The translations under genes were made by a program, and so were the position numbers. 64,000 nt of DNA from Cyanophora paradoxa CCMP329. Lineage: Eukaryota; Plantae; Glaucophyta. Where the stretch lies: contig QPMI01000217.1 of the NCBI GenBank assembly GCA_004431415.1, positions 1-64,000 of the forward strand, read 5' to 3'. The notes under the pieces were generated by a model. That model worked only from the letters and a program-made list of their open reading frames with translations, did no database searches and was not told the DNA's origin. Below are positions 5,579-61,844 of this stretch, piece by piece (positions within the stretch are counted from its first letter, which is position 1; each line of letters begins with the position of its first letter).

Positions 5579-6805
5579 ATGCAATCCTTCGTAGCTGGCT
5601 TTCCCGCAACCGTCGCGCACCGGGGGAGCATCGAGTGCTCTTCGCACGTACGGTGCTGCCCGCCCTCCCCGCCGCGGGGCTCTCTCGCTGCGCCGGCGCG
5701 GCGCGCCTTCTTCGCCGGCGGCGACGCGCACGTCCTCGGCACATTTCAGCTCCGCGCGGCCCATCGGGAGGTGAAATGGACCGCGCCGCTGCCCGGGACG
5801 GCGCCGGCGCGGCCGTTTGTCGTTCAGGCTGCGGCGGTGTCGGGCGAGAGCAGCAGCCCCGCCCCGAAGCGCTTCCAGCTGCTTCAGTCACTTCCCGGCA
5901 GCCTGAGGCGCTGGGGCTGGTTCGGCTTCTGGGCGCAGCTCGTCCTCTGCAGCATCTCGGTCCGCTTCGATCTTTCTCCGGGCCGGCGGCGCGCCCGGCG
6001 GCTGATCGCCCCGCGCAGTCGATGATCCTGCTATTCTCGAGGGCGTTCCAGGACCCGTACGCGACGGGGGCGGCGGCGGGGGCGGCGTCGGGCGTGGCGG
6101 GCCTCTCGTCGGCGCTGCTCGGCCTCGGGTGCTCCTTCCTGAGCCTCTTCTGGCAGTATGGGTACATCCGGCTGGCGAAGCGGGTGCGGCGGCGGGAGCA
6201 GGAGCTCGTGGGGCAGCAGGAGGGCGCCGGGGGCACGCTGCCGGTGCTGGAGGAGGAGCTGCAGGGCAAGTTCGAGTCGGCAAGGGGCGAGGTCGCCCGC
6301 TCCCTCAAGATCGGCCTCTTCATCAACCTCGTGCCCCCGCACCGCCCTGCCCGCCGCCCGCCCCGCGTCGCAGGCCGACGGGGCGGGGCGGGGCGGGGCA
6401 GGTGGGGATGTTCCTGACGCTGATCGGGGCGGAGGCGACGATCGGGGTGCTCATGGGCAAGGCCCTCGCCCAGGGCGTCGTCAACCCCTGGGGCGCCGCC
6501 CCGGGCCGGTGCCCGCCCCGCCTCTCCCTGCGCCCCGCCCCTCCCGGCCCGCCCCGACCGACGCGCCCCGCACAGCTTCGTGCAGGCCCTCGACATCTTC
6601 ATCGTGCAGGCGCGCCCCGCCCCGCCCCTCCCACCGCGCCCCGCCGCGCCCCGGGCGCGCCCTTGCGAGCGGGGCGGGGGCGGGGGCGGGGACCGTGCAG
6701 GCGAACACGAACACGCTCTTCTCCCACTTCGTGGGCCTCTGCGTCGGCCTCCGCCTCCTCAACAAGCTCGCCGCCGTCAGGGGGCCCCGCCCCGCCCCCC
6801 AGTAG
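5579..6805 (+). CDS. TIC21: Plastid inner-envelope TIC21/PIC1-family protein (DUF3611) with N-terminal transit peptide; 5 exons
   Basis: Spliced protein contains LRRWGWFGFWAQLVL, SFLSLFWQYGYIRLA, GLFINLVGMFLTLIGAEATIGVLMGKAL and VQALDIFIVQANTNTLFSHFVGL, which are DUF3611 signatures. N-terminus MQSFVAGF is followed by an Ala/Arg/Pro/Ser-rich presequence. Confidence 0.85.
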
Positions 6806-23176: not shown

Positions 23177-24556
23177 TTAAGCGATCACCGCGCGGTTCGA
23201 TTTATCTTTAATTTCGCAAAGCCTTTGAAGCCTAAGGCCGGGGGAGCAAGGCGTCGGGGCCGAGCTCGTCGTCCGCGTCGAGGTGCGCCTCCGCGCCCTC
23301 CCCGGCCCCCGCCCCGCCCCCCGCCGGCGTCCCCGCCCCCGGCCGCGAGGCCGACGCCGGGCGCCCCCGCGAGACGCTCCCGCGCCGCCGCCCCGCCCGC
23401 GAGACGCTCCCCGCCCGCGAGCGCGGCCGCGCCGGCGCCGCGGGGTCCGCCGGAGATCTAGAGTCGCCCGCCGCGGGGCCGGGCTCGATGGCGGCGGGGG
23501 CAGCGCGAAGCCCGGGGCGGCGCCGCGCGGGGGCGCCAGGCTGGCCAGCGCGGGGGCGGGCGGCGCCGGCGTCCCAGCCCGCGAGGAGGGCCGCGGGGTG
23601 GCGAGGGGCAGCGGGGGGCAGAGGGGCGTGGGGCGGGCGGGGCTCCCCTCGCGATCGGACGCCGGGCGCGGCTCGCGATCGGGCTGCGGCTCGGGCTGCG
23701 CGGGGCGCGGGGAGCAGGAGGCGGATCCGGAGCTCGAGACGCCGGCGAGCTCGCGATCGCGACCGGGGCCGGCGGCGGGGGATCCGGGGGCGCGGAGGGA
23801 GCGGATGCCGCGGCTGATGGGGCCGCACAGCACGGCCCCGCCGCAGGCCGCCGCCGAGGCCATCGCGGCCTGGAGCGGCGAGAGGCGGTCCGGGGGCGAG
23901 CCGGGGCCGGAGGCGGAGGGCGAGGCGAGGGCGAGGCGGCCGCGGGCGCTGGAGGAGCCCGGGGGGGAATCGCCGGGGACGGGCGAGCGGGGGGCGCGCC
24001 CGTCGCGGACGACGCGCATCGAGTGCGCCCGCGGCCGCCCCGGGCCCTCCGGCTCCGGCCCCGCGGCCGCACGCAATTGCAAGCCAGACGACGCGTACGA
24101 GTCCGCCCCTGCACGCGCACGCCGGGTCGGATCAATTTGATCGCGACGGCTCGGAGAGGATATCTTATATCGAAATTAAATATTTTGAGCCTTGACTTTC
24201 GAAGACGCATGCGCACCGGTCTCAGAGTCGACGTCACGAGGGGAGCTGCTGCATGCGCAGTCGGGGGAGGCGAGGCCGGCGGGGAGCGATGCCGGGTGGA
24301 AGGCGCCGGCGGAGGGGGTCGGGGGCCGGCCGCCCCGGTCCATCGAAAGGAGGGAGCGCGTGGAGGGCCCCAGCCCCGCGAGGTTGAGGGACCGGAAGCC
24401 TAAGGACGGCGCGCGGCGGCCGCGGCCGCTGGCGTCGGCGGCGGCGGCGGCGGCGGCGGCGCTCCGCGCGGCCTCGTAGACCTCGAGCGGGCCGGGCGTC
24501 CCCTTCGCGTCGGCCGCCAGCGCCATGTGCCGTACGCGTTCGCCCGCCCGCGCCAT
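23177..24556 (-). CDS. Possible hypothetical Ser/Pro-rich protein
   Basis: Two minus-strand coding-like GC blocks separated by a short AT-richer intron-like stretch (~24110-24190). Splice phase not resolved; no domain. Confidence 0.3.
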
Positions 24557-24900
24557 CCCAACGAGCTCCGACCACCTGCCAGAGCCGGTGCAGCAACCGG
24601 CTCTGCTTTCGAATCCCAACTCCGCCGCCACGTGCATTTTCTCGGGCGCTGCAATCGCCCTGCTCGCTGCGTGAGCCCTGCCTTCTAGATCTGGTCGACG
24701 AAAAGCCTTGAAGAGCTGCCGCCAGTGCCCGCCACTTGCAGCTGTCGGCGCGCGCCGGTTCAAGGGCTTGCCCACGCGTACGGCGCGGGGAGCGCCCGCC
24801 CGCGGGCGAACGCGTCATCGGCTGCAGCGAGGAGCGCTCACCGCGGCCGTGGCACGAGTAATATAGTATAGCTGCTCGGAGGCGAGTCGGAGGCTCGGAG

Positions 24901-25936
24901 GCGAGTCGGAGGCTCGGAGCCCGCGCACGTGCACTGGTACCGCGGTACAGTACCAGTGGGCCGCCCGGGCGGTAGACTCCGGTAGGACCGTAGTACCTTG
25001 CCACGGTGAGGCTTGCTATTAATTAATATTGGTCACGGTATTTCTCGGACGGGTTCGAGTCACCGCACCGATTAATATTCTACCAGGTACCTGGTAATCA
25101 TGAATACTTGTCATGACTCATGACTCATGATCACTTCAACGTACTCACTTGCAATTGTGCAACACTGCAACCTACCGTGCCTCCTTCCGTGCCTCCTAGG
25201 TCCCTTAGCCGCTCCTACCAGTGGCTACCACTGGCTACTAGTGGCTAGTACACTAGTACTGGCTACCACTAGCCTACCAGCGTAACCAGCCTACCACGCG
25301 GTCCACGCCTGGCACGGTACGTCCGACGGTCCCACCGTGTCATCGTGACGTCGACGGTGTCAAGCCTTCGAAAAAGGCTCGAACCGCTCGAAGTTTTTTT
25401 GCTTCCGAGCTTTCGACTTGAAACAAAAATGCCCCATGGCAATTCAATTTGGCCGTTGAGTCAAAGCCACTAGGATGCAAAATGTACTCGGTATCGATTT
25501 TCTTTGAAACAGCGAATACTGAGTACTGTCAACGAAGGAATCTTCGACAGCGTCTTTATTTCGTCTATATTCGTCAGACCTGCACTTTGACGAATATTTG
25601 ATACTCTTGAACGGGATTTTTGTATGGAGAAGGGTACTAGCGGCTGACCCGTCTATGGCGGAGTCGCGGGGCTGACGAAATTATGATGCTGTCGAACCAT
25701 ATTTTCGTCACGATTTTCGGGTTTTGTCGAAATTAAGTCTCGACGAATTTTTCTACGTCTACAGTATACGTAGCAGTGAGTGCCAGTGACTGCCGCAGTG
25801 CCAGTGAGTAGTACTGAGTACTACCACTGTACTACTCACTGAGTCAGTAGTCTTTCCATGATTCGTAATTCCTGATGCTGCGTCACAGGCTCACAGCCTC
25901 ACAGGCTCCGAGCCTCCGAGTCGGGCTCCGACTCGC
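24901..25936. mobile_element. Possible degenerate MITE/non-autonomous DNA transposon
   Basis: GCGAGTCGGAGGCTCGGAGCC (24901-24921) is the exact reverse complement of 25904-25936 once a 12-bp insertion (25920-25931) is removed. The AT-rich interior has repeated GACGAA/TTCGTC motifs (25560-25750). No TSD seen. Confidence 0.35.
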
Positions 25937-27000
25937 AGGCCGGGCTGTCGCAGCCTGCTTGAGGCGCCGTAACTCCGTGAGCTCGAGCCTGCGCGCGCAA
26001 TGCGCATGCGTCACCTGCGAATGAGTGCCAGATTTTCGAATTCTTTTCGAGAACGGCGAACGTCACGGCGTTAAGTTGTCGACGTCTTGTCGTTAACCCC
26101 CCGTCGACGTCAGCGCTTTAATTTTGCGATCGATATCGATCGCGAGCGCTGGCTCGATTTGTTTTTTGGGAGACTACGGTGGGGCGAAGTTCCCGGCGAA
26201 CCCCCCCGGTCCCCCCGTAGCCTAGTAGGTAGGTACTGATACTAGCACGCGGCGGCCTCTGCTAGCGCTCGGGCTCTGACTGGGCCGGCCGCCGGTTGGA
26301 AACGGGGTAGAGTAGTGCATGCGCGTGAGGACCGGCGCCGGCGGCGGCGCGGCCCGGCGGGGCGCGCGCGCACGCGTGCAACGCGGGCCCGCGCGCGCCT
26401 GCGCATGCGCGCGCGCACTGCCGACGCGGCCCCCGCGCCTGCAGCTGCAGCCTGCAGCTAGCTATAGCTATAGCGCTGCGCATGCGCAAATCATACTATG
26501 ATAGCTAGCGCTATAGTATGCATATGCATGCGCGCGCATGCCGGCGCCGCGCCTGCCAACTGCCGCCGGCCGGCGCGCGGCGGCGCGCGCGCCGGCGCCG
26601 CGCCCGCCGGGCCGCACTGCAGCTGCGCATGCCGGCGCCGGCGCCTGCACTGCTAGCGCGCTGGTGACGCCTCGCGCGTAATTGTTTTTTAAGTCCAGCA
26701 AGCCGCTAGCCGGAGCTCAGCTATAGCTAGCTACGCTGGCCAGCTAGCGAACCTGTCGGCTAGGTTGACGGCTAAATTGTGCGCTTGTACCCAGCAATCG
26801 GCGCCAAACTCGCAGGAGCTCTTTTTTTCCGCGTTCGGTACAACAGGTACTTGATGCGGCCTAGCGGGCCACGCGCTGCTTCCCGAGCGCTGGCATGTAT
26901 GACATGCTCTGTCGAACATTGCAAGAGCTTTCTTATGCACTTGGTCCGGCCTCTATACGACCACAGGATCAGGCGCTGCAAGGGATAGTCCAGGAAAGGG

Positions 27001-27308
27001 TCCGGTCCTTTTTTCCGCGCAGCATTCCGCTCTTTCCGGGTTCTGACAACGAATTCCGGGCTATGATGCATGCACTAACACGTGGTTAAGAGCTCGGAGC
27101 TGGATCGGGAGATGAGCAGACTCGTCATTTTGTAAGTTACCGAAAACGGGGGCCCTACCCCGTTTCCAATTAAGGAGAACAAACTTGAAATCACAAATCA
27201 AAGATACAGCAGACTATCACAAATCACATTATATAATTATCAAGCTTAAGAAGGATATATATATATATCGAACACGAGAAGGGACATGATCATACTATGA
27301 TCATGATA
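27001..27308 (+). repeat. 308-bp direct duplication, left copy (target-site duplication of the LINE)
   Basis: TCCGGTCCTTTTTTCCGCGC...CATACTATGATCATGATA, identical by eye to 42968-43275 including the 14-nt (AT)7 run. Confidence 0.95.
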
Positions 27309-29870
27309 CCCGCCGCAGGAGGCCGCGCGCCGCCGCCGCCGGTCGCCCAGGACGCGAGGGGACGAGGCCGCGACGCCGCCGACGCCTCCCGCCGACGCCG
27401 AGCAAGCCCGTGCAGCCCCGCCCGCGCCCCCCGCCCGCGCGCCGCGCGCCCCGCCGCAGGAGGCCGCGCGACGCCGCCGCCGGTCGCCCAGGACGCGAGG
27501 GGACGAGGCCGCGACGCCGCCGACGCCTCCCGCCGACGCCGAGCGAGCCCGTGCAGCCCGCCCGCGCCCCCGCCCGCGCGCCGCGCGCCCGCCGCAGGAG
27601 GCCGCGCGCCGCCGCCGCCGGTCGCCCAGGACGCGAGGGGACGAGGCCGCGACGCCGCCGACGCCTCCCGCCGACGCCGAGCGAGCCCGTGCAGCCCGCC
27701 CGCGCCCCCCGCCCGCGCGCCGCGCGCCCCGCCGCAGGAGGCCGCGCGCCGCCGCCGCCGGTCGCCCAGGACGCGAGGGACGAGGCCGCGACGCCGCCGA
27801 CGCCTCCCGCCGACGCCGAGCGAGCCCGTGCAGCCCCGCCCGCGCCCCCGCCCGCCGCCGCGCGCCCCGCCGCAGGAGGCCGCGCGCCGCCGCCGCCGGT
27901 CGCCCAGGACGCGAGGGGACGAGGCCGCGACGCCGCCGACGCCTCCCGCGACGCCGAGCGAGCCCGTGCAGCCCCGCCCGCGCCCCCGCCCGCGCGCCGC
28001 GCGCCCGCCGCAGGAGGCCGCGCGACGCCGCCGCCGGTCGCCCAGGACGCGAGGGGACGAGGCCGCGACGCCGCCGACGCCTCCCGCCGACGCGAGCGAG
28101 CCCGTGCAGCCCCGCCCGCGCCCCCGCCCGCCCGCCGCGCGCCCCGCCGCAGGAGGCCGCGCGCCGCCGCCGCCGGTCGCCCAGGACGCGAGGGGACGAG
28201 GCCGCGACGCCGCCGACGCCTCCCGCCGACGCCGAGCGAGCCCGTGCAGCCCCGCCCGCGCCCCCGCCCGCGCGCCGCGCGCCCCGCCGCAGGAGGCCGC
28301 GCGACGCCGCCGCCGGTCGCCCAGGACGCGAGGGGACGAGGCCGCGACGCCGCCGACGCCTCCCGCCGACGCCGAGCGAGCCCGTGCAGCCCCGCCCGCG
28401 CCCCCGCCCGCGCGCCGCGCGCCCCGCCGCAGGAGGCCGCGCGACGCCGCCGCCGGACGCCCAGGACGCGAGGGGACGAGGCCGCGACGCCGCCGACGCC
28501 TCCCGCCGACGCCGAGCGAGCCCGTGCAGCCCCGCCCGCGCCCCCGCCCGCGCGCCGCGCGCCCCGCCGCAGGAGGCCGCGCGCCGCCGCCGCCGGTCGC
28601 CCAGGACGCGAGGGGACGAGGCCGCGACGCCGCCGACGCCTCCCGCCGACGCCGAGCGAGCCCGTGCAGCCCCGCCCGCGCCCCCCGCCCGCGCGCCGCG
28701 CGCCCCGCCGCAGGAGGCCGCGCGACGCCGCCGCCGGACGCCCAGGACGCGAGGGGACGAGGCCGCGACGCCGCCGACGCCTCCCGCCGACGCCGAGCGA
28801 GCCCGTGCAGCCCCGCCCGCGCCCCCCGCCCGCGCGCCGCGCGCCCCGCCGCAGGAGGCCGCGCGCCGCCGCCGCCGGACGCCCAGGACGCGAGGGGACG
28901 AGGCCGCGACGCCGCCGACGCCTCCCGCCGACGCCGAGCGAGCCCGTGCAGCCCCGCCCGCGCCCCCCGCCCGCGCGCCGCGCGCCCCGCCGCAGGAGGC
29001 CGCGCGACGCCGCCGCCGGTCGCCCAGGACGCGAGGGGACGAGGCCGCGACGCCGCCGACGCCTCCCGCCGACGCCGAGCGAGCCCGTGCAGCCCGCCCG
29101 CGCCCCCCGCCCGCGCGCCGCGCGCCCCGCCGCAGGAGGCCGCGCGACGCCGCCGCCGGACGCCCAGGACGCGAGGGACGAGGCCGCGACGCCGCCGACG
29201 CCTCCCGCCGACGCCGAGCGAGCCCGTGCAGCCCCGCCCGCGCCCCCCGCCCGCGCGCCGCGCGCCCCGCCGCAGGAGGCCGCGCGCCGCCGCCGCCGGT
29301 CGCCCAGGACGCGAGGGACGAGGCCGCGACGCCGCCGACGCCTCCCGCCGACGCCGAGCGAGCCCGTGCAGCCCCGCCCGCGCCCCCGCCCGCGCGCCGC
29401 GCGCCCCGCCGCAGGAGGCCGCGCGACGCCGCCGCCGGTCGCCCAGGACGCGAGGGGACGAGGCCGCGACGCCGCCGACGCCTCCCGCCGACGCCGAGCG
29501 AGCCCGTGCAGCCCGCCCGCGCCCCCCGCCCGCGCGCCGCGCGCCCCGCCGCAGGAGGCCGCGCGCCGCCGCCGCCGGTCGCCCAGGACGCGAGGGACGA
29601 GGCCGCGACGCCACCGACGCCTCCCGCCGACGCCGAGCGAGCCCGTGCAGCCCCGCCCGCGCCCCCGCCCGCGCGCCGCGCGCCTTGCCGCAGGAGGCCG
29701 CGCGACGCCACCGCCGGTCGCCCAGGACGCGAGGGACGAGGCCGCTACGCCACCGACGCCTCCCGCCGACGCCGAGCGAGCCCGTGCAGCCCCGCCCGCG
29801 CCCCCGCCCGCGCGCCGCGCGCCCCGCCGCAGGAGGCCGCGCGACGCCGCCGCCGGTCGCCCAGGACGTG
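27309..29870 (+). repeat. Tandem array of ~140-bp GC-rich monomers (~18.4 copies) at the LINE 5' end
   Basis: Anchor GCCCCGCCGCAGGAGG recurs at 28141, 28281, 28421, 28561 etc.; 19 unit starts counted. Variants are mainly homopolymer-length changes and a few SNPs. Confidence 0.95.
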
Positions 29871-30212
29871 AGGGGGACCCCGCTGCTGTTGACCCGCTCC
29901 CCGCCACCACCTTGCCGACGCCAGCCCGGGGCCTGCATATGCATGCACTACAGCCGGATCTCTAGCCTGCCGTCCCTCGACTGCCCATGCAAGCAGACGC
30001 ATGCACGCCGAGCATATGCATGCACATGCATCCACAAACAAAATCGCCGACCTCATGCCTCTGCCCACGGACAATTGTTAACGCTAGCTACAGCTAGCTG
30101 TAGTCCTAGGACAGCCCAAACTCTGACCCGGGGGAGGAACAACCGGACGGGTACAGCAGTCAGCACCCTGGACGGCAATCCATTCGCACCGCTGGCGCGG
30201 CTGGGCGGCCGG

Positions 30213-30728
30213 ATGGCGCCTGACGACGATGCTGACAGCAACGACGACCCCAACGCGGCGGCTGACCCCCGAACTGGCCGTGGCCTGGAAAGCGGGCCGG
30301 GATCGAAGCGACAACGCCCGCAGTCGGCAGAGCCGGCCACCCCGTCCCGCCGCCACACGGAGAAGTCTATGCGTGGATACAGGCCGGGCGACACGCCAAA
30401 CCGACATGCCAACCCCCGAATGGTTCGGAACCTGACGCCCATGGAGCCCGCGGCGGAGCCGGCATCTGGGATGCCCGCGGCGGGGCGGGCGCAGCCAATG
30501 GCCGCGGTGGCCGTGGGGTGGACATCATCTGGGGCGACCTCCCCCGGGGCGGCTTTGCTGGGAGAGCCCGGGGCGGGATGGGGCCCCCCCCGCGGTGGGC
30601 GCGGACTCCCAGGCCGAGGCGCCGGCGGCAGGGGTGGACGAGGAGCACGTGGTGGCCGCGGCTTTGGGGCTGGCGCCGGCCGGGGTGGCGGCGGCCCTGG
30701 ACAGCAGCGGCTGCCCTGGCAGTACTGA
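30213..30728 (+). CDS. Possible short ORF1-like protein with an RGG-rich tail
   Basis: MAPDDDADSNDD...GGRGLPGRGAGGRGGRGARGGRGFGAGAGRGG..*; lies at the ORF1 position of the element. No RRM or CCHC motif recognised. Confidence 0.3.
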   Translation: MAPDDDADSNDDPNAAADPRTGRGLESGPGSKRQRPQSAEPATPSRRHTEKSMRGYRPGDTPNRHANPRMVRNLTPMEPAAEPASGMPAAGRAQPMAAVAVGWTSSGATSPGAALLGEPGAGWGPPRGGRGLPGRGAGGRGGRGARGGRGFGAGAGRGGGGPGQQRLPWQY

Positions 30729-33291
30729 GCTAGCTGCAACTCCAGCGCCAACCGCCGCGAGCCACAGCAAGTTAAGAGTAAGGCAGCCAAGCCCCTCCGG
30801 CCTAGATCCTGAACCAGTAATAGCGCTAGTTATACAAATGAATTCGCACACACCAAGACAAATGGCTAGGGATATGACTGCAGTGTCCATCTGTGTCAAG
30901 TCGAGAGATGAGCCTACGGGAACAAGCCTTTCGGACATCGGACCGGGTGGAGCTATTGTACTGGAGAAAGGGGCCTATACCTGCCTAGAAGCACTGCCTA
31001 CACCTGCCTAGAGAGCCGAAGCAGAGCAGAGCTACTATAACCCCCCTCAGGACAAGGGCGCCTACAGAGAGGACCGATGTATAAGCGAGGATGAGGTCGA
31101 AGCGGCTGAGCCTGAACTATAGCCCTCAATTTGGCAGGGAAGAAGCGCACTAAGAGAGCAAGGCCGACTAACCCCAGGGAGGGCCGGAAACCGGAGCCCG
31201 TGAGAGCCCGGGTGAAAACCGGCGGGCGCACAGCATCGCCGGCCGCAGCCGGCGACCTGTGCTCCTCGGCCGAGAGATACCTCCTCCAGCTGGCGCGCGC
31301 GCGCGCGGAGTCCGCTGCGGCGGGGGTTGGGAGGCCCGGGCCGCCCGAGTGCTCAGAAGCACGTCGCCTCGCCAGGAATCCAAGCATCTGTGCGGCCGCG
31401 ACGCCCACGGCCGCGACGCGGGCGTGCACTCACACGACCGACGATCATCTGCGCGGGCGCAGCGCAGGTCGCCGGCCCCATAGCCGCGGGCGGCCGATCG
31501 CTGCCGCAGAGAAGTGCTTGGGCTGAACGAGAGAGCAGCTGCTGAAGCCGCCGCTGGTGTCCGCTGGAGTAGCTCGCCGAACCGACCCACGGAGCGGATT
31601 CCTAACGGACGCGCGGCTAACCAGCTAAAGGAGGGATGGAGGCGCCGCCGAGGCGATTCGCGGCAGCCGGAGAGGCGCCCAGCGGGCAGGAGCCCGCCAC
31701 CTACTTTCTCTCCAGGTCGGGGTACGCGAATCCCAGTAATAGCGCTAGCTCTAGTCCCGCCAGAACCAGTAATAGCGCTAGCTCTAGTCCCGTCATGTAC
31801 GGACACCTCGACGCCGAAGTCACAACATCCAGATCTCGAGCTAGAGCTAAACAGGTGCAGAGCGGTGGTACCAGTGGGGGACCCAAAGGAGAACACCCGT
31901 ACTCATACGCGCCGGATGTGCACCTGGCCCTGTAGATCTAGACCCGATCACGACTTGCACGCGAGGCCCAGAGGGGTACGTGGGTGGAAAACGTACCCAT
32001 CAACTGTGCGGATCCGGCTAGCCCGGGCTCGCGCACGCTCGACAGCCACGCTAGGAGAACAGTCTAATCATGACTGCACCACCGGCCTGAAGCGCCAGCC
32101 TGTACTTACGACACCGACCGCTGCCTCCCGGACCCGGCCCCAGCAGGCCGCGGATCCTGCTGTATACGTAACACGACAGCTAGTCCCTAAGCGAAGCCAG
32201 GAGCCCGAGGCCGGTGCCGAAGCCGGCCCCCGCTACAGACCTGTACCTCAGAAGCTACTACGGTGCCGGCACCGGCTAGCCTGTCATGATCAAAGATGGC
32301 GCCAGAGGACCGACGCCGACGCCGGTACCGGTGCCGATGCCGGCCTCGACCTGACGGCGCCATCGGCACGTACGTATACGTATACGCGGCTCCGAGTAGT
32401 TATAACGCCTTGCACTAGCACTAATGCATATGATACCGAAACAGCTGGCGCCGGCACGCGCACCGGCGCCGGCGCCACCTTTAACTTGGGTAGTAACAGC
32501 CCCCCCGATCACGACCTAGCAGGCCCCAGATCCCGATCTAGAGCTAGGGCTGCCAAAGATGGGTACGCCAAGGCAATCACAACAGCTAGCGCCACCGCCA
32601 CTACAATTACTAGTACCAGTATGACACTGTGTATGTGCGCCGCCGGCGCTACCGCCGCGCGCGGCGCCAGCATAGCATACGTAGCCTCAGTGTCAGTGGC
32701 CCGCACGTGTACGGTCTGCACTGTAGACTACACATACTGCACCACATATACAGGCTACGTCTACACGGCGGTGCACGGCGCACTGCACGCCGCGGCGCCG
32801 GCCGGCGCTGCAGCTGGATCCCGACCCGAATTCGAATCTCCGCGACGCCTACCGCGAGCTCGATCACTGGCTCCGGCGAACCGTCCGAGTCCCCGGCCCC
32901 AAGACATATGCATGAACAGAAAAAGAATTTTTTCTGCCCTCCCGGACCGGCCGCTAGCGCCGGCACTACGTCGTCGTCGCCATTCATTGTGCACCCGCCA
33001 ATCGGGAGCAACCAGTCAATCGGGCCCGATAGCTGCCATGACCACAGCGCTAGAGGCTCACATGCGAATGCGGGGTGGCGCCGCCAGGCAGCGGCAGCGG
33101 GCTCGGCCCTCGCCGCGGCGGGCCAAGCTGACCCGGCCATGCTGGCCCATGCATCACGCGCGAGCCCGGCATCATGGCATCCAACGACAGCGCTATCCGG
33201 CCCGCCCCCCGCGCACCGCCGCGAAGAACCCAGGCCTGGAGTCTGGCCTGCACCAGGGGCACAAGAAAATGTTCCACCCGCCCAGAGTCCC

Positions 33292-36200
33292 ATGACCGCA
33301 TATAACACGCCTGGCCCCGCTGGTGTCGGCCGTCCCGCGCCGCTGCTCCGCACGCTATTTCCCCTCGAGCTATTTACACACGAGCGCCTCGGAGCCAAAC
33401 CTGCGGGCACTCACCGAAAATCGGGTATCATACGCCGCCGCTTTGACTCTGACCAGTATTGGAGACTCGCGACCTGGAACGCCCGCACCTGCTCTAGCGT
33501 CAACCATGTCGGCCAGATCCAGAAATATATGCTTGACTGGGGGCTGAGCGTATTAGGGGTCCAATCACTTAACTGCACCCAGGCTACGGTCAGAGCGATG
33601 CGCAGGTCAGTGACATCGGGGCTCATGCTCACGTCCGTGCACGCCGACTCGGCCACGCGCACAACTAGTGCTCAGGAGCTCCCAGCTCGAGCCCCGCCCA
33701 CCCCGCCCCTCTCGCAGAAGAAACTCCGCCAAAATCGAGCCTCCCCCCGCGGCTCCGGCGTAGCCCTTTTTTTCTCAGAAAATATGGCCAAGCACTGTTT
33801 TAAGACCTACACAATGCCAGGCCGCGTGGCCGGCTGTGAGCTTCGATTTGCAAATAATGTTCAGATCTTTATCGCCAGCGTGTACCTCCCCCCCGGCGAA
33901 AGTCGGACGGCGCGGTCTACTGAAAGTGCAAAAATCTTCGACTATCTCCGCGCGACCATGTACGCTGACTGGGCGCTCCGCCCCCGCGCGCACTTTTTCC
34001 TCCTTGGCGATCTTAACAGCTGCCTCTGTCCCGAGACGGGCAAAATCAGACAGGGGCAATATGCGACCACACGAGAACCTGATCACCGCTGGTGGCATGA
34101 ACTGCTTCACGACTGGACCCTCTCCGACGCTGCCACAGCCATGGGCACCGATGACCAAATCACCTTCATATTTCCTGACGCTCCTGACAACCCCAACCCC
34201 CGAGGCATCGCCCCAGATGGCACGCTCCGCCATGCTACCAGGCTCGACTACATCCTACAATCCCAAGTCGCGACTAACGCCCTTCGAGCGGCCCAAGCGT
34301 CGCCTAGAAACGCCCCTTTCTCCTCGGACCATTTCCCACTCCTTGCAGAGTACAGTAAACGGGCCCTGGCCATCAAATATAAACTGGGGCCCCCAGCGTC
34401 TTCGCCCGGCCCTCCGCGTTTCAAGTATGCGACACAGGCATCGCTCACAAAAATTCGCTTCAAAGAACTACTGGAAGAAAAGCTCCAGCAGCCGGTGCCG
34501 GGGTCCTCCGCTAGCGTACGAGAGCTACTCGCAACGCTGGAGGACGATGACGGCACCCCGCCAGAGGACCGCCTAGCCCGCCTGCACGAAGCCCTCAAAT
34601 CCACTCTCGCCCACATCTGTGACCTCGGCCAATCGCCAGTATTTGGCATCTTTACGCCCCCAAAAATCCCTCAAAAATTCTCCCGCCGCGGCCGCCCCGA
34701 ATCCAACCTGCTCACGAGGGCCCAGGAACTGCGCAAGGCATGGGAAGCGGCGCGCCACGGGATCGACTCCACGCCGCGCCGCGTACGGCACTCCCTCTCT
34801 GACCTGCGCAGGGCAATCTCAAATCACAACCACCGGCTTGACAAACTCCCAATAGACAAGCGGTCAGGCTATCTTAAACTCCCACTACCCCCTGTGCCGC
34901 CGCCATTCTCTGCCCGACAACCAAGCTGGCTCGACTATTTTCCAAGCTTCACCACTTGGGCCTCGGCTTTGGACACCAAAGTCCAGGCCACATTAAACGT
35001 TTCGAAGCCACGACAATCAGAGCAAACCGAGAGCGCTCGCAGCGCATGTTCAAGACAGACCTCGCCCAATACCTCCGCCAAACACTTGAAGCCCCAGAAC
35101 GCAGGCCGATTACCTCCTTCTCCCTCTGCCACGCTGGAGAATATCAGGTATACGGCAATGAAGATGCAGTGAAACAGTTCGCACGCCATCACATGCATGC
35201 CTGGACACGGCAGCGTAGCCCACTCACAGCGAACAGGGACCCGGGCGCGCTGCCACTTAGTACATGTGCACAGGAGGCCTCAATATGGCGCCGACTACAC
35301 TCCTCGCGCCAGGATATTGATGATGCAATTTATGCGTACCTAATGGAACCCACCAGCGAGGCCGAACTGGACCGAATCATCGGCTCTCTCCGAAACGGTG
35401 CGGCGGGGCCCTCGGGATTTTCCCACGAAATGATAAAAATGCTGTGGGCGGCACCGGTCCTTTCAAAGAAAACTTGCGAAGAACTACGCAAGGCGGGCCT
35501 GGACCCGGAGCCGCTCCAAGAACCCGATAACCTGTTCCCGACGTGCCGCCAGGTAATCCTCACTACGGTAAATCTGATCCTAAAACTCTCGTCTGTCCCT
35601 GCGCCCCTTCTTCACGGAAATATATGTCTTATCCCCAAGGGCGGGGAATGGGATGGGCACCCTGACAATGTCCGCCCCATTACACTCCAAGAATGCACAT
35701 TGAAGCTTGTGACTGCCATTCTCACTGACCGCCTCTCGCGCGTCCTTCGTAAACACGATATATTGCAGGGCGCGAACTTCGCCTTTACTCGAGGCAAGTC
35801 CACCGACGAGCCTCTGTACATGCTGCGCGCGCTACTGGAGGACGCAAAACAATTCTCGAAACCGATCTACCTGCTACTGCTAGATATTCGCAGAGCCTAC
35901 GACAGCGTCAGCTGGTCTAGCATGGAAATGGCACTCCGCCGCCTAAAAATTCCCGAACGGTACATAAGCCTCTACGGACAAATCTCAACATCACGTACAG
36001 CGTCCGTCGCGACAGGGTACGGCCCAACTGACCCCTTCGATGTGGAGTGCGGGCTCCCGCAAGGAGGAACCGAGTCCCCAATTCACTGGCTCATCTTCTA
36101 TGACGTATTTCTATCGGCTTTACGCGAAGTCAGCGCTGCGGAGAGCACCCAATACTCCATGGGCCCGCCGCCCTCTGCGTCTGACGCTAACCTGCCCGCG

Positions 36201-39200
36201 CCCACCCGACGCCTACCGTAGTACGAGCGCGCCTGCCCCGGGTGACCTCGCCGGGGCAAGCATACGCAGACGACACCGTACTTATTAGCGGTACAGCCCG
36301 GGGCATCCAGCTGCACGCAGACCTGGCCTCTGAATTCTTCTGGATACATGATATTGCCCTCAACGCGAAGAAAACCGAATTTACGTACAACAACGTCTCC
36401 CCACGCCCGTCTGCCCCGCTACTAGGCCCGCCCGATGCTAAAGAACCGGCCGACAAAGTCCTTGCGCCGAACAAACCATTCAAGGTGCTCGGGGTCTGGA
36501 TGACAGCAAATCTGGACTGGCGGCGGCAATTTGAGGCTGTATACTCAACAGCTCGGGCAGCCTGCGCGATACTAAGGCGTAAGAAACTCACCGCAAAGAG
36601 ACGATATACATAGTAAATAGCGTCCTTCTCCCTCGCATCACTTACGCCTGCAAGATTGTTTCCTTTACCGAGAGACAATGTGCCCAGCTCGACACTCTCT
36701 GGATGACGCTCACTAAACATCATGCCCGCCTTAGGGGGTCCACGCCCAACGCGCTCATGTGGAGCCGAGGCTTCTACGGCCTCAAGAGAACGGAGGACGA
36801 ACAGCTGGCCATTCACGTGCTCGATGAAACCATCCGCACGAACCACCCCCTGCTTCTCCCGTATACCATGCACCGCATTTTCGCAGCGCAGGAGCAACTG
36901 GGGCTTCCCCTTCCGCCATACTGCTACCCCAATTTACAGCTGGGCCCCGCAGCTTACAGAGACAATTTTGCACTAGCTGTAGCGCGAAATCTGACCCGCG
37001 CCGGCTACAAACTCGACTCAGGCAAGGACTATCTCGTTCCGGCCCTGCCTCACCCGCAGCTCGAACGCCGCTTTGTGCTCACAACACTGCTCCCCCCGCG
37101 CCTCCTGCGTGAGGCTGCACCATTCCTTTGGCGCCACGATATCCTCACAGCTGCTGAAGTCACGGGGCCCGACGGCGTCAGTGTGCTCGACTGGATTAGC
37201 TTATGGGGCAGCGGGAAAATTAAACAGCGACTCAATAGACCTCCCTCCTGGTTCCCGTCGTTCACCCGAGCAATATGTCAGCCCGTCGGCCCGCGCGCCA
37301 TCCCCCGTCGTCTCCGCTTCCCCATGCACCTGCAGCCTGCGCAAAATCCGGCTGCTGCCCAACGTACCCTTCTTGAAGCCGGCCTGCTCTCTCCCCAGTA
37401 CAAAGTCGGCGGCCTCGTTTGGACAACGGAAGCGTATCTAGGACGCATCTGCAATATCCGGCGGACAACTGACGCTGACGACGGCAGAGAACGCGTCCTA
37501 GTTGAGCTCGAACACTGGGTCCGCCGAGACAAAGGCCAGGACGACCGAGAGGACCACATATATGACACCACCGGCGAACCCGTCTCCTTCTTCCGCTGCA
37601 TAATGGATCCCAAAGAATGCGACAGCCGCTTCACAGCGAAAACGCCGGAAGCAGAGGCTCTCCGCCGCGCATGTGACCACTCAGACCCGGCCTCCCAACG
37701 GTGCCGCTGGACCGAAGACACAGCCTACATCTACCCCGCCCGACTTCAGAGCCTGGTCCCCGAGTCGCGGTCAGGCCGTGTCGCCGAGCATGCTCGCATT
37801 TTCCTTGAAGATAAAATAACGTGGTGGCCCGAGTTCCGCGACACTCATTTCCTCCCCCCGTGGGAACAGGACTGGAATTATGATCCAGATGATCACGAGG
37901 CGCCCCAGCGGCCAGACGGAGTCGCCGCTCGCGACCCTGGGACCGTCCCCCCGCCGACAGCGCCTCGGGCCTACCCCCAACGCCGACAGTTGAGCGACTT
38001 CTGCATCCCATCGTCAGAGTATGCTGACCCATTTTGGAACCTGATTGCCGCGGAGCTCGGCCGCACCTCCCTCCCGCTTGACCGCGAGGGCCGACTCGCA
38101 GCCACGGATGCCAGTACCATGGACGCTGCCTCAGAAGCTGCACTCACGGCCTACGCTGGCGTCTGGCCCCGTGAGAGCAACCCGGCCTCACTAGCTGACG
38201 AAGCTGCCCGCACGCAGCGAGGGATAGCCCTCCGTCAACAAATTCACGCACTAGCTGACCGGCTGGGCACAACCGGCGTCGATACTGACCAGATGGCGAA
38301 ACTTCGCGGCCTTGCAGACGCCATCCCGACCGACGGCAGCGACTTTTTCGTGGCCCCGTGTCCTGGCACAGTGAACAATAACAAAGGCGAGCTCCTCGCC
38401 GTCCTGTCCGCCCTGCTGCTCTCTCCCGAAGGCTGCACAGTGAAAACTGACAGCTTCACTGCAATGGCGGACTATTCCAAGTACGTCTCGCATCGCGCCA
38501 CCGCCACTCTTCGCAGCTGCATTCGAGCCTCGTACTCCCATCACCTTAAAGCGTATGCTGAGGTGCAGTGCATCCGGCTTGCACTAGCAAGGGCCGTGGC
38601 ACCCGACAGAATGCTATACGAAGAACGTCTTGTCAAAGTCAAAGCCCACCAGAAAGAATATATAACTCGGCGCCGCCCGCGCCCGGCTGCCGCCCCCGCT
38701 GAAATGGCCGACCACGACTCGGAATCAGACGCAGACTCATACGAATCCTACCTCTCTGACCGAGACCCGGTCGCTCCCGAACCTACGGAGGCGGAACTGA
38801 TAGCTCAATATGGCCCTGGCACGGGAGTATACGAAGGGCGCGCGAACCCGCTAACCGGCGCCTACAACTATATCTCCGAGCACCTCCGCGCGGGCACTGC
38901 CCACATCCACCGTCGGAACGCCCGCCGAGCCGTCCACCAAATGCAGCAAGCGTCTCGTGCCTCCAGGCGAGCAGAACGACAGAGGCGGCGCGAAGCCCGG
39001 GCTGCGCTAGGTCAGCATACACCAGGACTACCAAGCCTGCCCCTGCTGGTGGAAGAAGAACGGGTTCCAAACCGTGCATTTGATCGGGACAACGCACGAG
39101 CCGACCGCCTCGCCGCTGCGGCACTGGCTCTGCACCCCAGCGCAGACCTCTCCCGGCAGGCACTCGACGGCCGGGAACTTTCCTCCTGGGCTGACCCTGA

Positions 39201-42200
39201 GGAAGCAGCCTGGCAATCTGACCCGAAGACCCGTCCCGGCCGCAACAGTTGCATCAAAACGCGCGTGGCACGCCCGCGGGAACCGGTCTTTCCCCTGGCG
39301 GATTTGACATGGTCCTACTCTTTTCGCCCCCGCGCTGCTGGAACGAGAACTACGACACTCGTAGAGTTTACAGAGTTGAGTCTGACCCGCGAGCACACGT
39401 AAAAAATACGTGCGAATTTCGGAACTTCTCCCGTCTCCTTGCAACCGAAAAATGCCATTTGGGCAGTCCGGTAGACCGTGCGCGCCTCGCCCGCGAATAC
39501 CGCAAGAAAGGGCTCTCCCGCGATGCATCGCACCCCCTGAATGCGAGGCTTGCTCAAATCACGAAATTCAGCTTCGGACTTGCACCCCTCATGCGTGAAC
39601 GTGCCCGGGACGCCCCCCATCTCTACAGTGCAATAAATTCAAATGGACTCTGTGTTCGCGCAGGCTGCGCGTCCGTGCTAGGCCCAGACGGCCGGCCCAC
39701 CCCAGCCCCGCCATGGCAGCCGCCTGCGTCTGACCCCGAGGAAGACGGTGGGAGTCGGAACGGCCCCAACGGCGACGGCACCCCGGCCGCACGAGACGCA
39801 CGCCAGGCACCGCGGCCCCCCCCTATCGTTAGCGGGACGCCTGAAACCCACGACCATGCCTTTGGTCTCTGCCCAGCAACACGCACCCTCCGTATCGAAA
39901 CCCAAACTAAGATATTCAACCTATTGTACGAAACCATATCGTCTCAACGCCTAAAAACTGCAGTCGATGCGGCAGCAGCTGGCGACCCAGCCTACAAGCT
40001 ACCCCCGGCCCTGCGCCAGGACGGACTGTTGCTGCGCCAACTGTTCCCGGCCTTTGCACTGGCTGACGATGCAAACTGGGGATGGTCAGAGCGTCAGCGC
40101 CAACGGCCGGGCCCCCTTCCTTCGCACCTCACGCAGCCACTCTATGGCCTGCCCTATCAGTGGCAAAGCCTCGGCAGCAAACTCTTCGCCGACCTTGCCT
40201 GCGATTCTCCCCGCCACACCGTCAGGCTCCTCCTTCCTCGTAGCCTCATCCCTGCCCTGATTTACTTAGATGTACGTAGACCGGCGGCGCTTAAATGCGC
40301 CAACGCAATTATGGCCACCATCATAGACTACACCCAAGCAATCTGGAAGGCTCGCAATAGCGAAGTCCAGTCCTGGCAACGCCGACACGGGATTACTCGC
40401 CGCCAAACTCATGCACCTCGACCCTCGCGCCCTGCCGAGCCCTCACCGGCGAGGTCGATGACAGCCAGGATTAGGGATGAGCCCACGAGCCCCTCGACCG
40501 TGGTGGCCCCGGCCCCGCGTCGACGGATACGTATACCCAACGGCCAGCTCACCCTCTCATCAGACCTACAATTAGTCAGCCAGTCGCGCCGCTCTCGAAC
40601 CCGCGCTGCTCCCCCAGCACCGTGGCCGGCCACGGCCCCCCCTACAACAGCGATACCCGCAACGCCAGTGCCCCCTACCACCGCCCCGAGCTCGAGCCCG
40701 AGACCTAGACCTGTAGCTAGGCCGGCAGCTGCTAACAGCATCACCAATATTAATGCCAGTAATGCAGGGTGGCCGGCTCCGCCGTCCCCACCTGCATTAC
40801 GTGCCGCCTGGGCCCAAGTACGCCGCTCCCCTACCCGCGCTCTACCCAACAGTGCAGTCCGAGAGCTCCCGGCAGCCCGCAGCGGCCCCGCTGCACTGTT
40901 TGGCAGTGCCTCCGTATCGCTCCATGACCTAGCCACGCTGAACGGCTCGTCCTGGGTGAATGCCGACGTCATCAACTACCACCTTGCCCGACTAAACCTT
41001 CTTGCGAGCGGAGAAATTAACCCTCGCCGACGCGTCTTACTTTTCCCGCATACTTTCTACGCCGCTATTCCCCAGACAATAACGCCGGCGGGCAGCGCCC
41101 GCCTGCGCCGTCGCACCGCTGGGCGCGGAATTAATGTCTTTGACTATGACCTATTACTCTTCCCTATCCACACCCCGGGCCACTGGATCCTTGCAGCCCT
41201 CCATCTCCGTGCTCGCCGTGCTGAACTATACGATGGATACAATCTCCCGGGCCCCGAAGAGGCCCGCCGTCAACTCCTGACCCTCCTAAAATGGCTCAAC
41301 ATGGAGCGCGAATGCGCAGCCCTAGGCTCCTCGACCGGCGCCGACGACGCCCTCACCTGGCCCCTCCCCTCAGCCACCCGATTCTCCATCCCGGCCCAAA
41401 ACGATCGCTTCAACTGCGGGATTTTCGTCTGTGCCTTCGCCGAAATACTTGTCCGTGCTCTGGAACATGACCCCACGGCCTACACGCCCTCCTTCACGGG
41501 CACTGTGTCTAACTGCGCCACCTGGCGCGGCCTCATTCTTTCTCGGATTCTAGGCTCGCAGGCCTTGGATACGGAGGCGCCCACGAGCACCGCCTCCCAG
41601 CCCGAGCAGCCCCGGGCAATACTGGTGGCTGCGCTGGCCCCGGGAGAACTGCCACGGGATGCCCCCCTCAGCTGCCGGTGCGGTTACGCTGCTGCCTCCC
41701 CCGAAGCCCTGGCGCAGCACAAACGCAAAGGAAAATGTACCGCTGCAGTGTCGCCCCCCAAAACCAGCGAGACAGACCGCGCCCCCCAAGACGAAGCCAT
41801 TGCAGGCCCATCCAGGCCCAAAATAGTCACGCCCGCACCGGAACCCCAATACCGGCCCCCGCTGAGCGCGCAGCCTACCCCTAGGCCTGCGGCCCGGAAC
41901 TCGCGAGCAGACATCCGCACCTTCTTCCAACCCCGCCCGCGCCCGTCGGCCGTCAGCGACACCTCTATAGCTAGGCCTGCAGCTAACCCGACCTCCACGA
42001 CGCCCCCCAGGCTGAGCTCGAGCTCACCTACAGACAGGCCCCAGAGTCCAAAGGACAGTCCGCCAACGCAAGTGCCCCCGCCTGACACACCAGTGGCACA
42101 AGCCGACGGCACGGCAACAGTGCGGACGCGACGCCCGCGCCTCCTTCGAGAAATTCAAGAGTCGGCGGGATTCCGTGCAGCCCGAGGCAATAATCCCGGA

Positions 42201-42587
42201 CCCGGACCTCGCCCCCGCAGATCTAGAACAGCTGCAGCAGCTTCCGTCACCCCTGCTGCTGCTCACGGTCACGCCCAGCGGCGGGATGGAGCGTCGTCCG
42301 CAGCCGCATCAGCTGTGCCCGAGCCTCTTCCCGAACCTCAAGACCGGCCTCCCCACAAGACCGGCCGCCGCCCCGCCCTCCCACCGAAGAGGCCCGGCCC
42401 TCACCCCAGCCTCCTCCCCCGCACCCCCCTCCTCCACCCTTCCTCTTCTCGAAACGGGCTCTCCAGCTCCACCCTCCCCATCTCGCCCCTCCAGCAACCT
42501 GTCCCATCTGTTTTCTGTCGCTCCACCGACACCGCCACCTCCACCGCCTTCCACGCCCGCTCCTCTGTCCTGCACGGGAACACGTGA
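33292..42587 (+). CDS. LINE polyprotein (~3100 aa after 4 single-base frame corrections): APE endonuclease - RT - RNase H - Zn knuckle - Ulp1/C48 protease - Zn finger
   Basis: APE: ATWNA, SVYLP, LLGDLN, RLDYI, SDHFP (33460-34350). RT: AAGPSG, RPITLQE, LDIRRAYDSV, GLPQGGTESP, AYADD, FKVLGVW (35390-36520). RNase H: ATDAS, KGELLAV, KTDS, KVKAH, NARADRLA (38100-39120). Zn knuckle CVRAGC..ETHDHAFGLC and IWKARN. Ulp1: WVNADVIN, FY, FPIH..GHW, YD, QNDRFNCG (40915-41550). Start codon is uncertain. Confidence 0.9.
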
Positions 42588-42922
42588 GGTACCACCGCGG
42601 AGATCTCCTCCTCTCTCTTCTCATCTTTGGGATCTCGCCGCTTGGCTTTAAACCCTGAGCCTGCCAGCCAACAATCTCCCGGCCCCAGCCCCCTGCCACC
42701 TCTCTACCCCACCCCATCGTGACCGGCCCTGGCCCGTCGCGGGGGGGAGGCTCCGAGAGAGCCGCCTCAAGGGTAGAGGGGGCGGGGCTCGCAATAGGGT
42801 ATAGCCCTTGGGGCGCCTAGTCGGAGACCCAATAGTGGGGAGTAGACTAGGCTAAAGTATATTAGTTGGCCTAGGGTAGACCTAGGCCTAGGGTAGACAG
42901 AAAACGATGTTTTTTGTGTACC

Positions 42923-42967
42923 AGGGGCTCTGTCCCCTAATAAACTACGGAAAACTAAAAAAAAAAA
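42923..42967 (+). terminator. LINE 3' end: short stem-loop, AATAAA and poly(A)
   Basis: AGGGG-CTCTGT-CCCCT hairpin (42923-42938), AATAAA (42939-42944) and A11 (42957-42967) directly abutting the right duplication. Confidence 0.75.
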
Positions 42968-43275
42968 TCCGGTCCTTTTTTCCGCGCAGCATTCCGCTCT
43001 TTCCGGGTTCTGACAACGAATTCCGGGCTATGATGCATGCACTAACACGTGGTTAAGAGCTCGGAGCTGGATCGGGAGATGAGCAGACTCGTCATTTTGT
43101 AAGTTACCGAAAACGGGGGCCCTACCCCGTTTCCAATTAAGGAGAACAAACTTGAAATCACAAATCAAAGATACAGCAGACTATCACAAATCACATTATA
43201 TAATTATCAAGCTTAAGAAGGATATATATATATATCGAACACGAGAAGGGACATGATCATACTATGATCATGATA
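42968..43275 (+). repeat. 308-bp direct duplication, right copy
   Basis: Same length and sequence as 27001-27308. It begins immediately after the poly(A). Confidence 0.95.
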
Positions 43276-45401
43276 AGAACGCAAAAGACTCTGAGATAAG
43301 GAGAACGAGCACGAGGAGACTCTGAGAATTCGAAGTAGTAGAAGAGCTCAAGGGCATCGACACAGCAGTACTAGTCACACTAGAACGACGAGGAGCACGG
43401 GGACGTAGCTATAGCAAATAAGGAGAATTAACGTTAACGAGCTCGCGATCGAGCACGAGAAACTACAGTCGAATATCCAGCCAGATCTAGAATTCAAATT
43501 AAAATTTAAAGACACGACAGCCTGGCAGAGCTAGTCGCACTAAAGCTAGCTACAGCTCGAGCGCAGGTGAATTCGAATATTCAGTGCATATGATTGATCT
43601 GCAGCTGCGCGCGAATCTGCATATGCATACGCGAATATGAACGTTAACGTTTTACCGCGCACGCGTAAATATACGTACTACGGTACGTATACGTATATAT
43701 ACGCGTACGTATACGCTGCAGCTGCAGCTGCGATTCTGCAGCTGCGCGCACGCGATTGCGATGCGCACGTGAAGTTGAATTGCCAAGTTGAGGGAACTTC
43801 GGACGCTCAAGGTTCATCCTTCAAGGCTTCCGATGATAAATTTTGCAAAAAGCACGATTAGGATTGTAATATACTAAGTTATAACTTATTACTTATGACG
43901 CATGCGGACACCCGTAAAAAAACTCAGTTCTCACGGAACGGTCGAGCCAAAAATCCTCGGTAGTTTGATTGAGGTCAGAAAACTTACCTTAGGGTTGTGT
44001 TAACGCATATGAGAACACAGTGTGGCATAGTCGACGTCGGAAGTCCGACCGTCGGACGGTCGACGTCCGACGTTGCGACGGGCGACTCCCGGACCCGGGA
44101 GTCCGTTCAGCGACTCCGGAGTCCGCGTGCGTTAACCGTGAACGTTGCTGCACCGTACTACTTTTAGTACGGTACGCCACCGTACTACGGTACGCGCCGG
44201 CGCGTGGCGCCGCAGTACCGTGGTACTACCGGTAGTACTGACTCCGAACTTAAGAGTCCGAAGTTCGAGTCCGAACACGGTCTGCTGCACATGTACAGCG
44301 GCACTACAGCCACTGAGCCTGCATGGCAGAGCGTTTGGCCCAGACTCCGCCGCCCAGTGGCCCGGCGGCGGCGGGGCGCCGGCCCGGCGGCCGGCGCCGG
44401 CGCCTCTAATATGGCATGCTATAGCGCTAGGCTAAATAATACTGTAGAACTAGAAATATTAAGTGGGCTGCATATTTATAGTACTTAAAAAGTTTTGGGC
44501 AATTTCCTAAATATTACACGCCCCCACAGTGCTGGTAGACTAGAGGCTGTGGCCGGTAATTCACCAAAAAAAACATTTCGTAAATATTTCTCGCCTGCTA
44601 AAGCCGAGATTTCTCAGGGGTACTCCTTTCTTCGCCATACAAAAGCCCTGCGAAGACCGACCTACCAATAGCTAAAAAAAAGCTTAGGGCCGCGGGGATG
44701 AACCGGCATAAGCGAAGACCGACCTACCGTAGTACCAATGCTACCAAAGCCTACCATTGCTACCAATAGCTAAAAAAAAGCTTAGGGCCGCGGCCCGCGG
44801 GGCTGAACCGGTATACATGCTAGTACTGGCCGCCGGACCGCGGCCCGGCGGGCCCGCTAGCGCGCGGCCCGGCTGAACCGGTGAAAAGCGGCCGCCGGGC
44901 CGCGGCAAGTTCACTAGCCTAGTACCGTAGCTGGCCCTGCTAGCCTGGCAGTGGCAACTAGTATAAACCAATAGGCTAGCTATTAATTTGCGATCGCGAG
45001 GACGTCGACGTTCCGGGCAACTTCCGGCCCCATTACACCGAAATCTGACGGACGACTCCGAAAGCTAGCGCCCGATAGGCCAGCTTGACGTCATTGAACG
45101 GTTAGAAAAAAGCGAATTCGACAAGGCAATTTCGAAAGCAACTTCGTCATGATCAGAGATGGTTAATTAGGCCAGCTCCGCGAGGTTCGTCACCTGTTTT
45201 TTACCGGCAAAGTCCCCCGGCGACTAGTGTAAAACAAATTACAAAGTGGTCCGGTTAGACTCCGGTAAGTATATACGTATATATATATACCGGCCAACGC
45301 GCGTTCAAGAATGGGGGGGGGGGGGGGGGCTTGCCCCCCTGCTTGTAAATTTTGCAAAAAAAAAGCCGATCATGATCACAAGTGCGCCGGCGTGCGCTGG
45401 G

Positions 45402-61406: not shown

Positions 61407-61844
61407 CGCCCCGCCGGGCCCCCCGCCCCCTCCCCGGCCTCCCCATGCAACGGCTCTCCTGTCTTGACCCTCTGTCCTAGTTCATAGAACGCAGCGCCGT
61501 ATTCGAATCACATTGGTCCTTTCGAAGCGATTCGAAGGCTAGTACAGTCGAAAACGAGGGGTGAGGGGAGAGGCGGGGGAGGAGGGGGGGGGGCCGGGGC
61601 GGGCGGGGGTAACATATGCCATGATCATTATGCCTAGTAGCATGCGATCATGTATATATATATATATATATATATACGTATACATGTGATCATGGACTCT
61701 GAGACCAAGGGCGCCGGCGCCAGCTAGCGCTCGCGGTGCTACGTATACAGAGTGCATGCACTGCTGCATGCAGAGCCTAGCTGTAGATAATAATTATAAA
61801 TCAATAATCATTAGTATGACTTCAACAGGCGCAGGGGACACGCA

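Follow-up and report, generated by a model that had tools for sequence, protein, structure and literature searches.

In a stretch of 64,000 nucleotides from the glaucophyte Cyanophora paradoxa CCMP329 (assembly GCA_004431415.1, contig QPMI01000217.1, positions 1 to 64,000 of the forward strand; hereafter the window), two copies of a 308-bp sequence enclose 15,659 bases that make up one non-LTR retrotransposon on the plus strand, i.e., a long interspersed nuclear element (LINE) that lacks long terminal repeats (LTRs). We consider it probable (roughly 0.8), judging from the sequence and its arrangement, that the 308-bp repeat is the target-site duplication (TSD) of this LINE, and that it arose through target-primed reverse transcription (TPRT) with a distant break of the second strand.

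The 308-bp repeat and its borders

An earlier reading of the window, made from the letters alone (the sequence-only reading), had claimed that positions 27001-27308 equal positions 42968-43275. This is confirmed: 308 of 308 positions are the same, with 0 mismatches, and the ends are sharp, with 0 bases of extension on either side. The pair is the sole long direct repeat with two copies in the window (family D8), and a 28-nt probe taken from the start of the 308 bp matches both copies and nothing else, where 0 matches are expected in shuffled sequence. The two copies, and the two breaks from which they may have arisen, are located as follows:

27001..27308, no strand assigned: left copy of the duplicated target (identity to 42968-43275)
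42968..43275, no strand assigned: right copy of the duplicated target (identity to 27001-27308)
26995..27006, minus strand: putative first nick, in the bottom strand at 27000/27001 (junction of the poly(A) with the right copy)
43270..43281, plus strand: putative second break, in the top strand at CATGATA^AGAACG, 308 bp away from the nick (junction of the left copy with the first monomer)

The right copy starts at 42968 on the base after a run of eleven A's (A11, 42957-42967), which itself lies 12 nt past an AATAAA hexamer (42939-42944), and the last base of the left copy, 27308, adjoins a tandem array of 140-bp monomers (27309-29875). The repeats hence enclose the whole element, 5′ end and tail included, which is the geometry of a TSD and not that of LTRs. 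The sequence-only reading had argued along the same lines, and rightly so: the apurinic/apyrimidinic endonuclease-like domain (APE), the reverse transcriptase (RT), the RNase H, the poly(A) signal and the tail are all inside the repeats. Furthermore, the pentamers just outside the repeats are unlike each other (AAGGG on the left, AGAAC on the right), and no short duplication of 4-6 bp is present there. Pfam scans of the element returned no integrase, gag or aspartic protease domain, and no context of a primer-binding site (PBS) or polypurine tract (PPT) was found. An LTR retrotransposon was considered and is contradicted by the repeats beyond the poly(A) tail, by the unlike pentamers and by the absence of integrase, gag and aspartic protease.

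The start of the target reads AAAGGG^TCCGG, and the nick site is not rich in T or A, which is how it had been read before. The duplicated target is intergenic and has a G+C content of 42.5%; that of the whole 64-kb window is 71%. A tRNA scan found no transfer RNA (tRNA) in the window, no Rfam family was found in 24500-31500 (which takes in the left flank, the left 308-bp copy and the element's 5′ portion), and the 308-bp target is without tRNA, small nuclear RNA (snRNA) and ribosomal RNA (rRNA). It is this geometry, together with the 308/308 identity, that suggests that the insertion may be very recent, as had been claimed, and that it is probably no artefact.

Anatomy of the element and quality of its assembly

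By its sequence, the element is an APE-type non-LTR retrotransposon, since a predicted RT and a predicted APE are present, the tail is followed by the TSD, and there are neither LTRs nor an integrase. Its parts are as follows, with the source of each in brackets:

27309..29875, plus strand: 5′ array of 140-bp monomers, 18.4 copies, 97% matches, 88% G+C (Tandem Repeats Finder)
29876..33291, plus strand: 5′ region of about 3.4 kb without recognisable open reading frame 1 (ORF1) or domain (Pfam, translation)
33292..42658, plus strand: long reading frame of about 3,100 codons, ATG at 33292, with six −1 frame steps in the window copy (frame map)
33460..34341, plus strand: APE (Pfam Exo_endo_phos, E 1.3e-05, 25.5 bits against a cut-off of 24.5; WNAR and SDH motifs)
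35631..36499, plus strand: RT, with a frame break at about 36165-36200 and AYADD at 36260 (Pfam RVT_1)
38101..39111, plus strand: RNase H, candidate catalytic D, E, D, H, D (weak Pfam RNase_H, E 0.021)
39648..39872, plus strand: CCHC zinc-finger-like motif, CVRAGC ... ETHDHAFGLC, with a long insert (reading of the translation; kept in Cyanophora homologues)
40911..41486, plus strand: Ulp1/SENP (C48) cysteine protease (Pfam Peptidase_C48, E 1.3e-10; PDB SENP1, E 8.7e-14)
42939..42967, plus strand: AATAAA (42939-42944) and A11 tail (42957-42967) (sequence reading)

The monomer array is presumed to be the promoter region of the element, by analogy with the monomers of L1. The open stretches 29802-30725 and 31484-33292 gave no Pfam match, and those of 29876-33291 translate into products rich in Arg, Ala, Thr and Pro that have a non-coding appearance. 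In the long reading frame, the RVT_1 profile is matched over its positions 1-143 in one frame (E 2.9e-16) and over positions 151-204 in the next. When the RT piece 34878-36218 was searched against the PDB, the R2 RT was retrieved at 1.6e-11 and human L1 ORF2p at 1.4e-07. By score, the RT is thus nearer to R2 than to L1 despite the presence of an APE, which fits an early-branching or Dualen-like position of the element. The candidate catalytic residues of the RNase H are located in the motifs ATDAS, KGELLAV, KTDSFT, VKAHQ and NARADRL, and in the homologue P0003 RNase_H is recognised at E 1.9e-04. The look-alikes that a language model returned for the CCHC region carried zf-RVT (score 0.90, which is weak), and candidate catalytic motifs of the C48 protease are GHW, YDG and QNDRFNCG. 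As for the features of the L1 clade, APE, RT and CCHC are present, ORF1 was not recognised in 29876-33291, and the nick site is not T/A-rich.

The coding region of the window copy steps down by one frame six times, and related proteins are uninterrupted across the breaks (tblastn). Our data on other copies are short-read contigs of public runs, of which 14 DNA runs (X1-X14, about 93-124 million letters each) hold the flank of the insertion. In three public DNA runs, the contigs of the family carry an extra C at 39221, 39234, 39276, 39291, 42350, 42379, 42667 and 42677 and an extra CT at 42425, and all nine differences sit at C-runs. Inserting the first four C's produces a single open frame over 36583-42584; this comparison with short-read contigs covers the last two of the six frame breaks. 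The frame breaks look like undercalls of C homopolymers that a long-read assembly retained in an unpolished repeat, and not like decay. Since the C-runs of the window copy look undercalled, apparent frameshifts in the repeats of this assembly should not be taken as decay. In the tail of the long reading frame (42227-42658), frame 1 matches P0001 and P0002 to 42655, including LLIFGISPLG, a motif conserved at the C-terminus; the frame probably ends at 42658 rather than at 42587.

The state of the assembly also bears on the question of whether the duplication itself, or the join at one of its junctions, might have been made by the assembler around a multi-copy repeat of 16 kb. The window copy is short of C's at nine C-run places, which points to a long-read assembly that is incompletely polished in its repeats, and among the contigs listed, none bridges 42903-42968. 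However, a chimera of two LINE copies predicts unrelated flanks, and not 308 identical bases with exact ends. Furthermore, the unique right flank (43376-43898) is reproduced perfectly in the short-read contigs (523/523 in X1 and X5, 522/522 in X12), and in some contigs the 308 bp are joined, at their start, to left-flank-like sequence. We thus hold an assembly artefact to be very improbable.

Copies of the family and the target locus

In a search of 5.8 billion proteins, every relative of the RT piece below E 1e-30 was a Cyanophora-type EukProt model, and so were all seven matches of the C-terminal piece; the EukProt relatives of these two pieces have identities of 39-62%. A 360-residue stretch that contains the CCHC motif and extends beyond it has three relatives in 1.84 billion representatives, namely two Cyanophora-type EukProt models and P0128, which is near-identical to that family. 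The 3′ end of the element had no exact match in the metagenome contigs scanned, and no gene is on record with the product of the window's ORF.

In X1, contig depth is about 1,030-1,180 for the element as compared to about 117 for the contig of the unique flank, and this ratio suggests that the family has about nine copies. The family contigs differ from the window copy by about 1%, mostly by transitions. In three DNA runs, the majority of family contigs skip 63 bp (41973-42035) as well as 6 bp near 40527, and 6 bp near 39776 are skipped by the majority of family contigs in X5 and X12 only. The window copy may belong to a minor subfamily.

The sequence-only reading had named a recurrence of the 308 bp at other copies as evidence against a TSD; another copy of the family has a different 3′ flank. 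A contig from the RNA-labelled run X15 matches 42831-42944 exactly and then continues with GAAAAAAAA CCCGGAGGGCGG..., and the 308 bp are not found there. In this copy, the tail follows directly after AATAAA and a G, a position that fits what is expected of a post-transcriptional tail, and it leads into a different GC-rich flank that starts with CCCGG. The 308 bp are thus not a constant 3′ neighbour of the element and not part of it. The CCCGG of the X15 copy and the TCCGG of the window, two cases only, hint at a possible preference for YCCGG at the first nick.

Several observations weigh against our interpretation of the repeat as a TSD. A single insertion was examined, and homopolymer errors of the assembly fall inside the element. 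Neither an empty site nor a listed contig across either junction was found among the contigs, to which this search was confined and for which the junctions lie 16 kb apart. Two contigs, with a mutual agreement of 0.85, enter the 308 bp from left-flank-like sequence. The consensus of this entry ends in ...CAAAGGGATAGTCCAAGAAAGGG, with TCCGG following at the boundary, and it is unlike the left flank of the window at 26971-27000, which means that a paralogous left junction exists. Loose contig ends are found at 42968 and 43196. The summed contig depth over 42900-43299 amounts to 1,860-2,666 in X1, near twice the depth of the element, but copy number cannot be read from summed depth, to which pieces of as little as 18 nt contributed around the 308 bp. 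It seems that the target module has at least one paralogue elsewhere, and this leaves some room for recombination histories.

The near-doubled depth in X1 and the further left-flank-like junction to the 308 bp (at least one) would be expected if the element carried the 308 bp as a terminal direct repeat, or if every copy sat in the 308 bp as a fixed, sequence-specific target. We give this idea very little credence: the depth is open to the reservation just mentioned, and the repeats lie beyond the poly(A) tail, with no duplication of 4-6 bp around them and no integrase, gag, PBS or PPT context. The copy in X15 is tailed into another, GC-rich flank, and for a fixed target in particular, the 308 bp contain no tRNA, snRNA or rRNA.

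A recombination history would have to take the form of a secondary rearrangement, be it that a circle with the LINE and the 308 bp integrated by homologous (Campbell-type) recombination or that paralogous targets recombined ectopically. Such a rearrangement requires an earlier insertion beside the same 308 bp, and it does not predict that the repeat ends at the exact base of the tail and at the 5′ base of the element. Homologous partners for it do seem to exist, given the loose contig ends at 42968 and 43196, which point to further occurrences of the target region, but the chance that it took place appears slim to us, as the staggered break of a LINE insertion would account for both ends in one step and has published precedent.

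In the right flank of the insertion, short motifs at 43296-43409 and 43700-44499 reach a summed contig depth of 3,000-6,400, as compared to about 117 for unique sequence, and small joints are seen there (43316 to 43374 and 43405 to 43296). The intergenic DNA, which is richer in AT, is composed of short modules that recur widely.

At the far end of the window, an ORF of 712 codons on the minus strand (61811-63949) encodes a leucine-rich repeat (LRR) protein, the best matches of which are mainly bacterial LRR or Roc-COR-type proteins with 34-52% identity. They come from Chloroflexi, cyanobacteria and Neochlamydia, and there is one Cyanophora-type model at 42%; none of the matches is near-identical.

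Integration and comparison with known LINEs

Of all the steps in LINE integration, the cutting and joining of the second strand is understood least, and elements or hosts in which the second break lies hundreds of bases off provide a natural handle on it. To our knowledge, long TSDs as the habit of a family are documented only in Dualen of Chlamydomonas and in R9 of rotifers, and in human L1 they depend on repair. From the end product (the repeat, its placement and the LINE domains), which is all that we observe, we infer the following course of TPRT. The APE of the element would cut the bottom strand first, between 27000 and 27001, and the 3′ end set free would prime the synthesis of cDNA from the polyadenylated RNA. 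No T/A microhomology would be involved, there being no run of T's to pair with the tail. The top strand would be broken 308 bp onward, after the CATGATA of CATGATA^AGAACG, and fill-in of both single-stranded stretches would duplicate the 308 bp. The sequence-only reading had suggested a spacing of two nucleosomes between the breaks, but nothing in our analysis supports this, and 308 bp is off a 147-bp ladder.

As to how general such a stagger might be, we lean slightly towards a recurrent property in the Cyanophora genome, either of such LINEs or of the way in which the host resolves the intermediate. A one-off distal break, as it occurs in a minority of human L1 insertions, has in our view a little under an even chance. 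A more far-reaching proposal, which we regard as rather unlikely, is that there is a glaucophyte lineage of giant polyadenylated LINEs without a restriction-like endonuclease (RLE), with the order APE-RT-RNase H-CCHC-Ulp1, that routinely breaks the second strand 100-300 bp away. If this were true, it would imply that kilobase-scale staggers can come about without the dual APE and RLE, and long staggers would instead go back further, as a property of this architecture or of the manner in which these algae resolve TPRT intermediates. Furthermore, every jump would amount to a small segmental duplication of host DNA, of a few hundred bases. If a second lineage of algae had LINEs with a Dualen-like order of domains and a poly(A) tail but no RLE that can be detected, it would put the need for two endonucleases to the test.

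Precedents for long TSDs come from several systems. In mutation-accumulation lines of Chlamydomonas reinhardtii, more than half of the de novo insertions of Dualen-4b_cRei show duplications longer than 50 bp, and the median length is 900 bp (Lopez-Cortegano et al. 2023, PMC9977147); the authors propose that the dual APE and RLE of the Dualen clade cause these long duplications. The previous record, as summarised in the same paper, is the 126-bp TSD of R9 in bdelloid rotifers (Gladyshev and Arkhipova 2009). For human L1, TSDs of more than 100 bp make up as much as 10% of events in HeLa cells (Servant et al. 2017, PMC5223499, citing Gilbert 2002, 2005 and Symer 2002). In cells deficient in nucleotide excision repair (XPA, XPC or XPD), this proportion is 57-91%, and 38% of these TSDs are longer than 1 kb; the large TSDs are ascribed by the authors to a distant second nick (PMC5223499). 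In the light of the published Dualen and L1 cases, one TSD of 308 bp falls within known LINE behaviour. The sequence-only reading had held that TSDs above 100 bp are known for only a few families; its mention of R9 stands, but the account was incomplete with respect to the 900-bp median of Dualen-4b_cRei and to the human L1 events. A LINE insertion with a long TSD is therefore as such not new. What appears to be newer here is the glaucophyte host, the poly(A) tail and the lack of a detectable RLE.

The Dualen/RandI clade was reportedly defined by Kojima and Fujiwara in 2005. Dualen-4b_cRei and the Cyanophora element are both algal LINEs of giant size that encode an APE, an RT, an RNase H and a C-terminal cysteine protease, and in both a target duplication far beyond the usual length is seen. 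The Dualen layout parallels the order APE-RT-RNase H-CCHC-X-cysteine protease of the Cyanophora element. However, APE and RLE are both defining for Dualen, whereas in the Cyanophora element an APE is predicted and no RLE was detected by Pfam or PDB sequence searches. Neither of its downstream pieces gave an RLE or R2 match in these searches, and an AlphaFold2 model of 39342-40421, built on a 7-row alignment, had a predicted local distance difference test score (pLDDT) of 40.6, which is too low to use. By eye, RQDGLLL...ALADD bears a faint resemblance to the KPDLV...D core of the RLE of R2, on which we base no claim. Furthermore, the protease of Dualen-4b_cRei is drawn as Josephin-related (PMC9977147), while that of the Cyanophora element belongs to the Ulp1/C48 type, and the hosts are a chlorophyte and a glaucophyte, respectively. 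The tail differs as well: a microsatellite such as (ATT)n is typical of Dualen/RandI, though not defining, and the Cyanophora element ends in A11. None of the eight RandI families tabulated has an (A)n tail (0/8), and all eight end in microsatellites (PMC3747384). For now, we therefore place the Cyanophora element among the APE-type LINEs, with a layout that resembles Dualen, and do not class it as Dualen, because no RLE was found in these searches, its predicted protease is of the C48 type and it has a poly(A) tail.

With human L1, the element shares an APE, polyadenylation, a presumed insertion by TPRT and the fact that some L1 TSDs exceed 100 bp. In contrast to the Cyanophora site (AAAGGG^TCCGG), L1 nicks at T/A-rich sites, the T's of which prime on the tail. 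The Cyanophora element in addition carries an RNase H and a C48 protease, and its RT scores slightly better against R2. R9, so far as it is described in the secondary account cited above, resembles the element as a non-LTR retrotransposon with a reproducibly long TSD (126 bp). It differs, within the same account, in being of the RLE type with a fixed TSD in 28S rDNA, whereas the Cyanophora target is intergenic and another copy of the family lies elsewhere. Finally, an Ulp1-like cysteine protease is also carried by the LINEs NeSL and Utopia-1_TSP (Kojima and Jurka 2015, PMC4640811), which are likewise non-LTR retrotransposons. In these elements, however, the protease is N-terminal and is combined with an RLE and specific targets, whereas the predicted protease of the Cyanophora element is positioned C-terminal to APE-RT-RNase H-CCHC.

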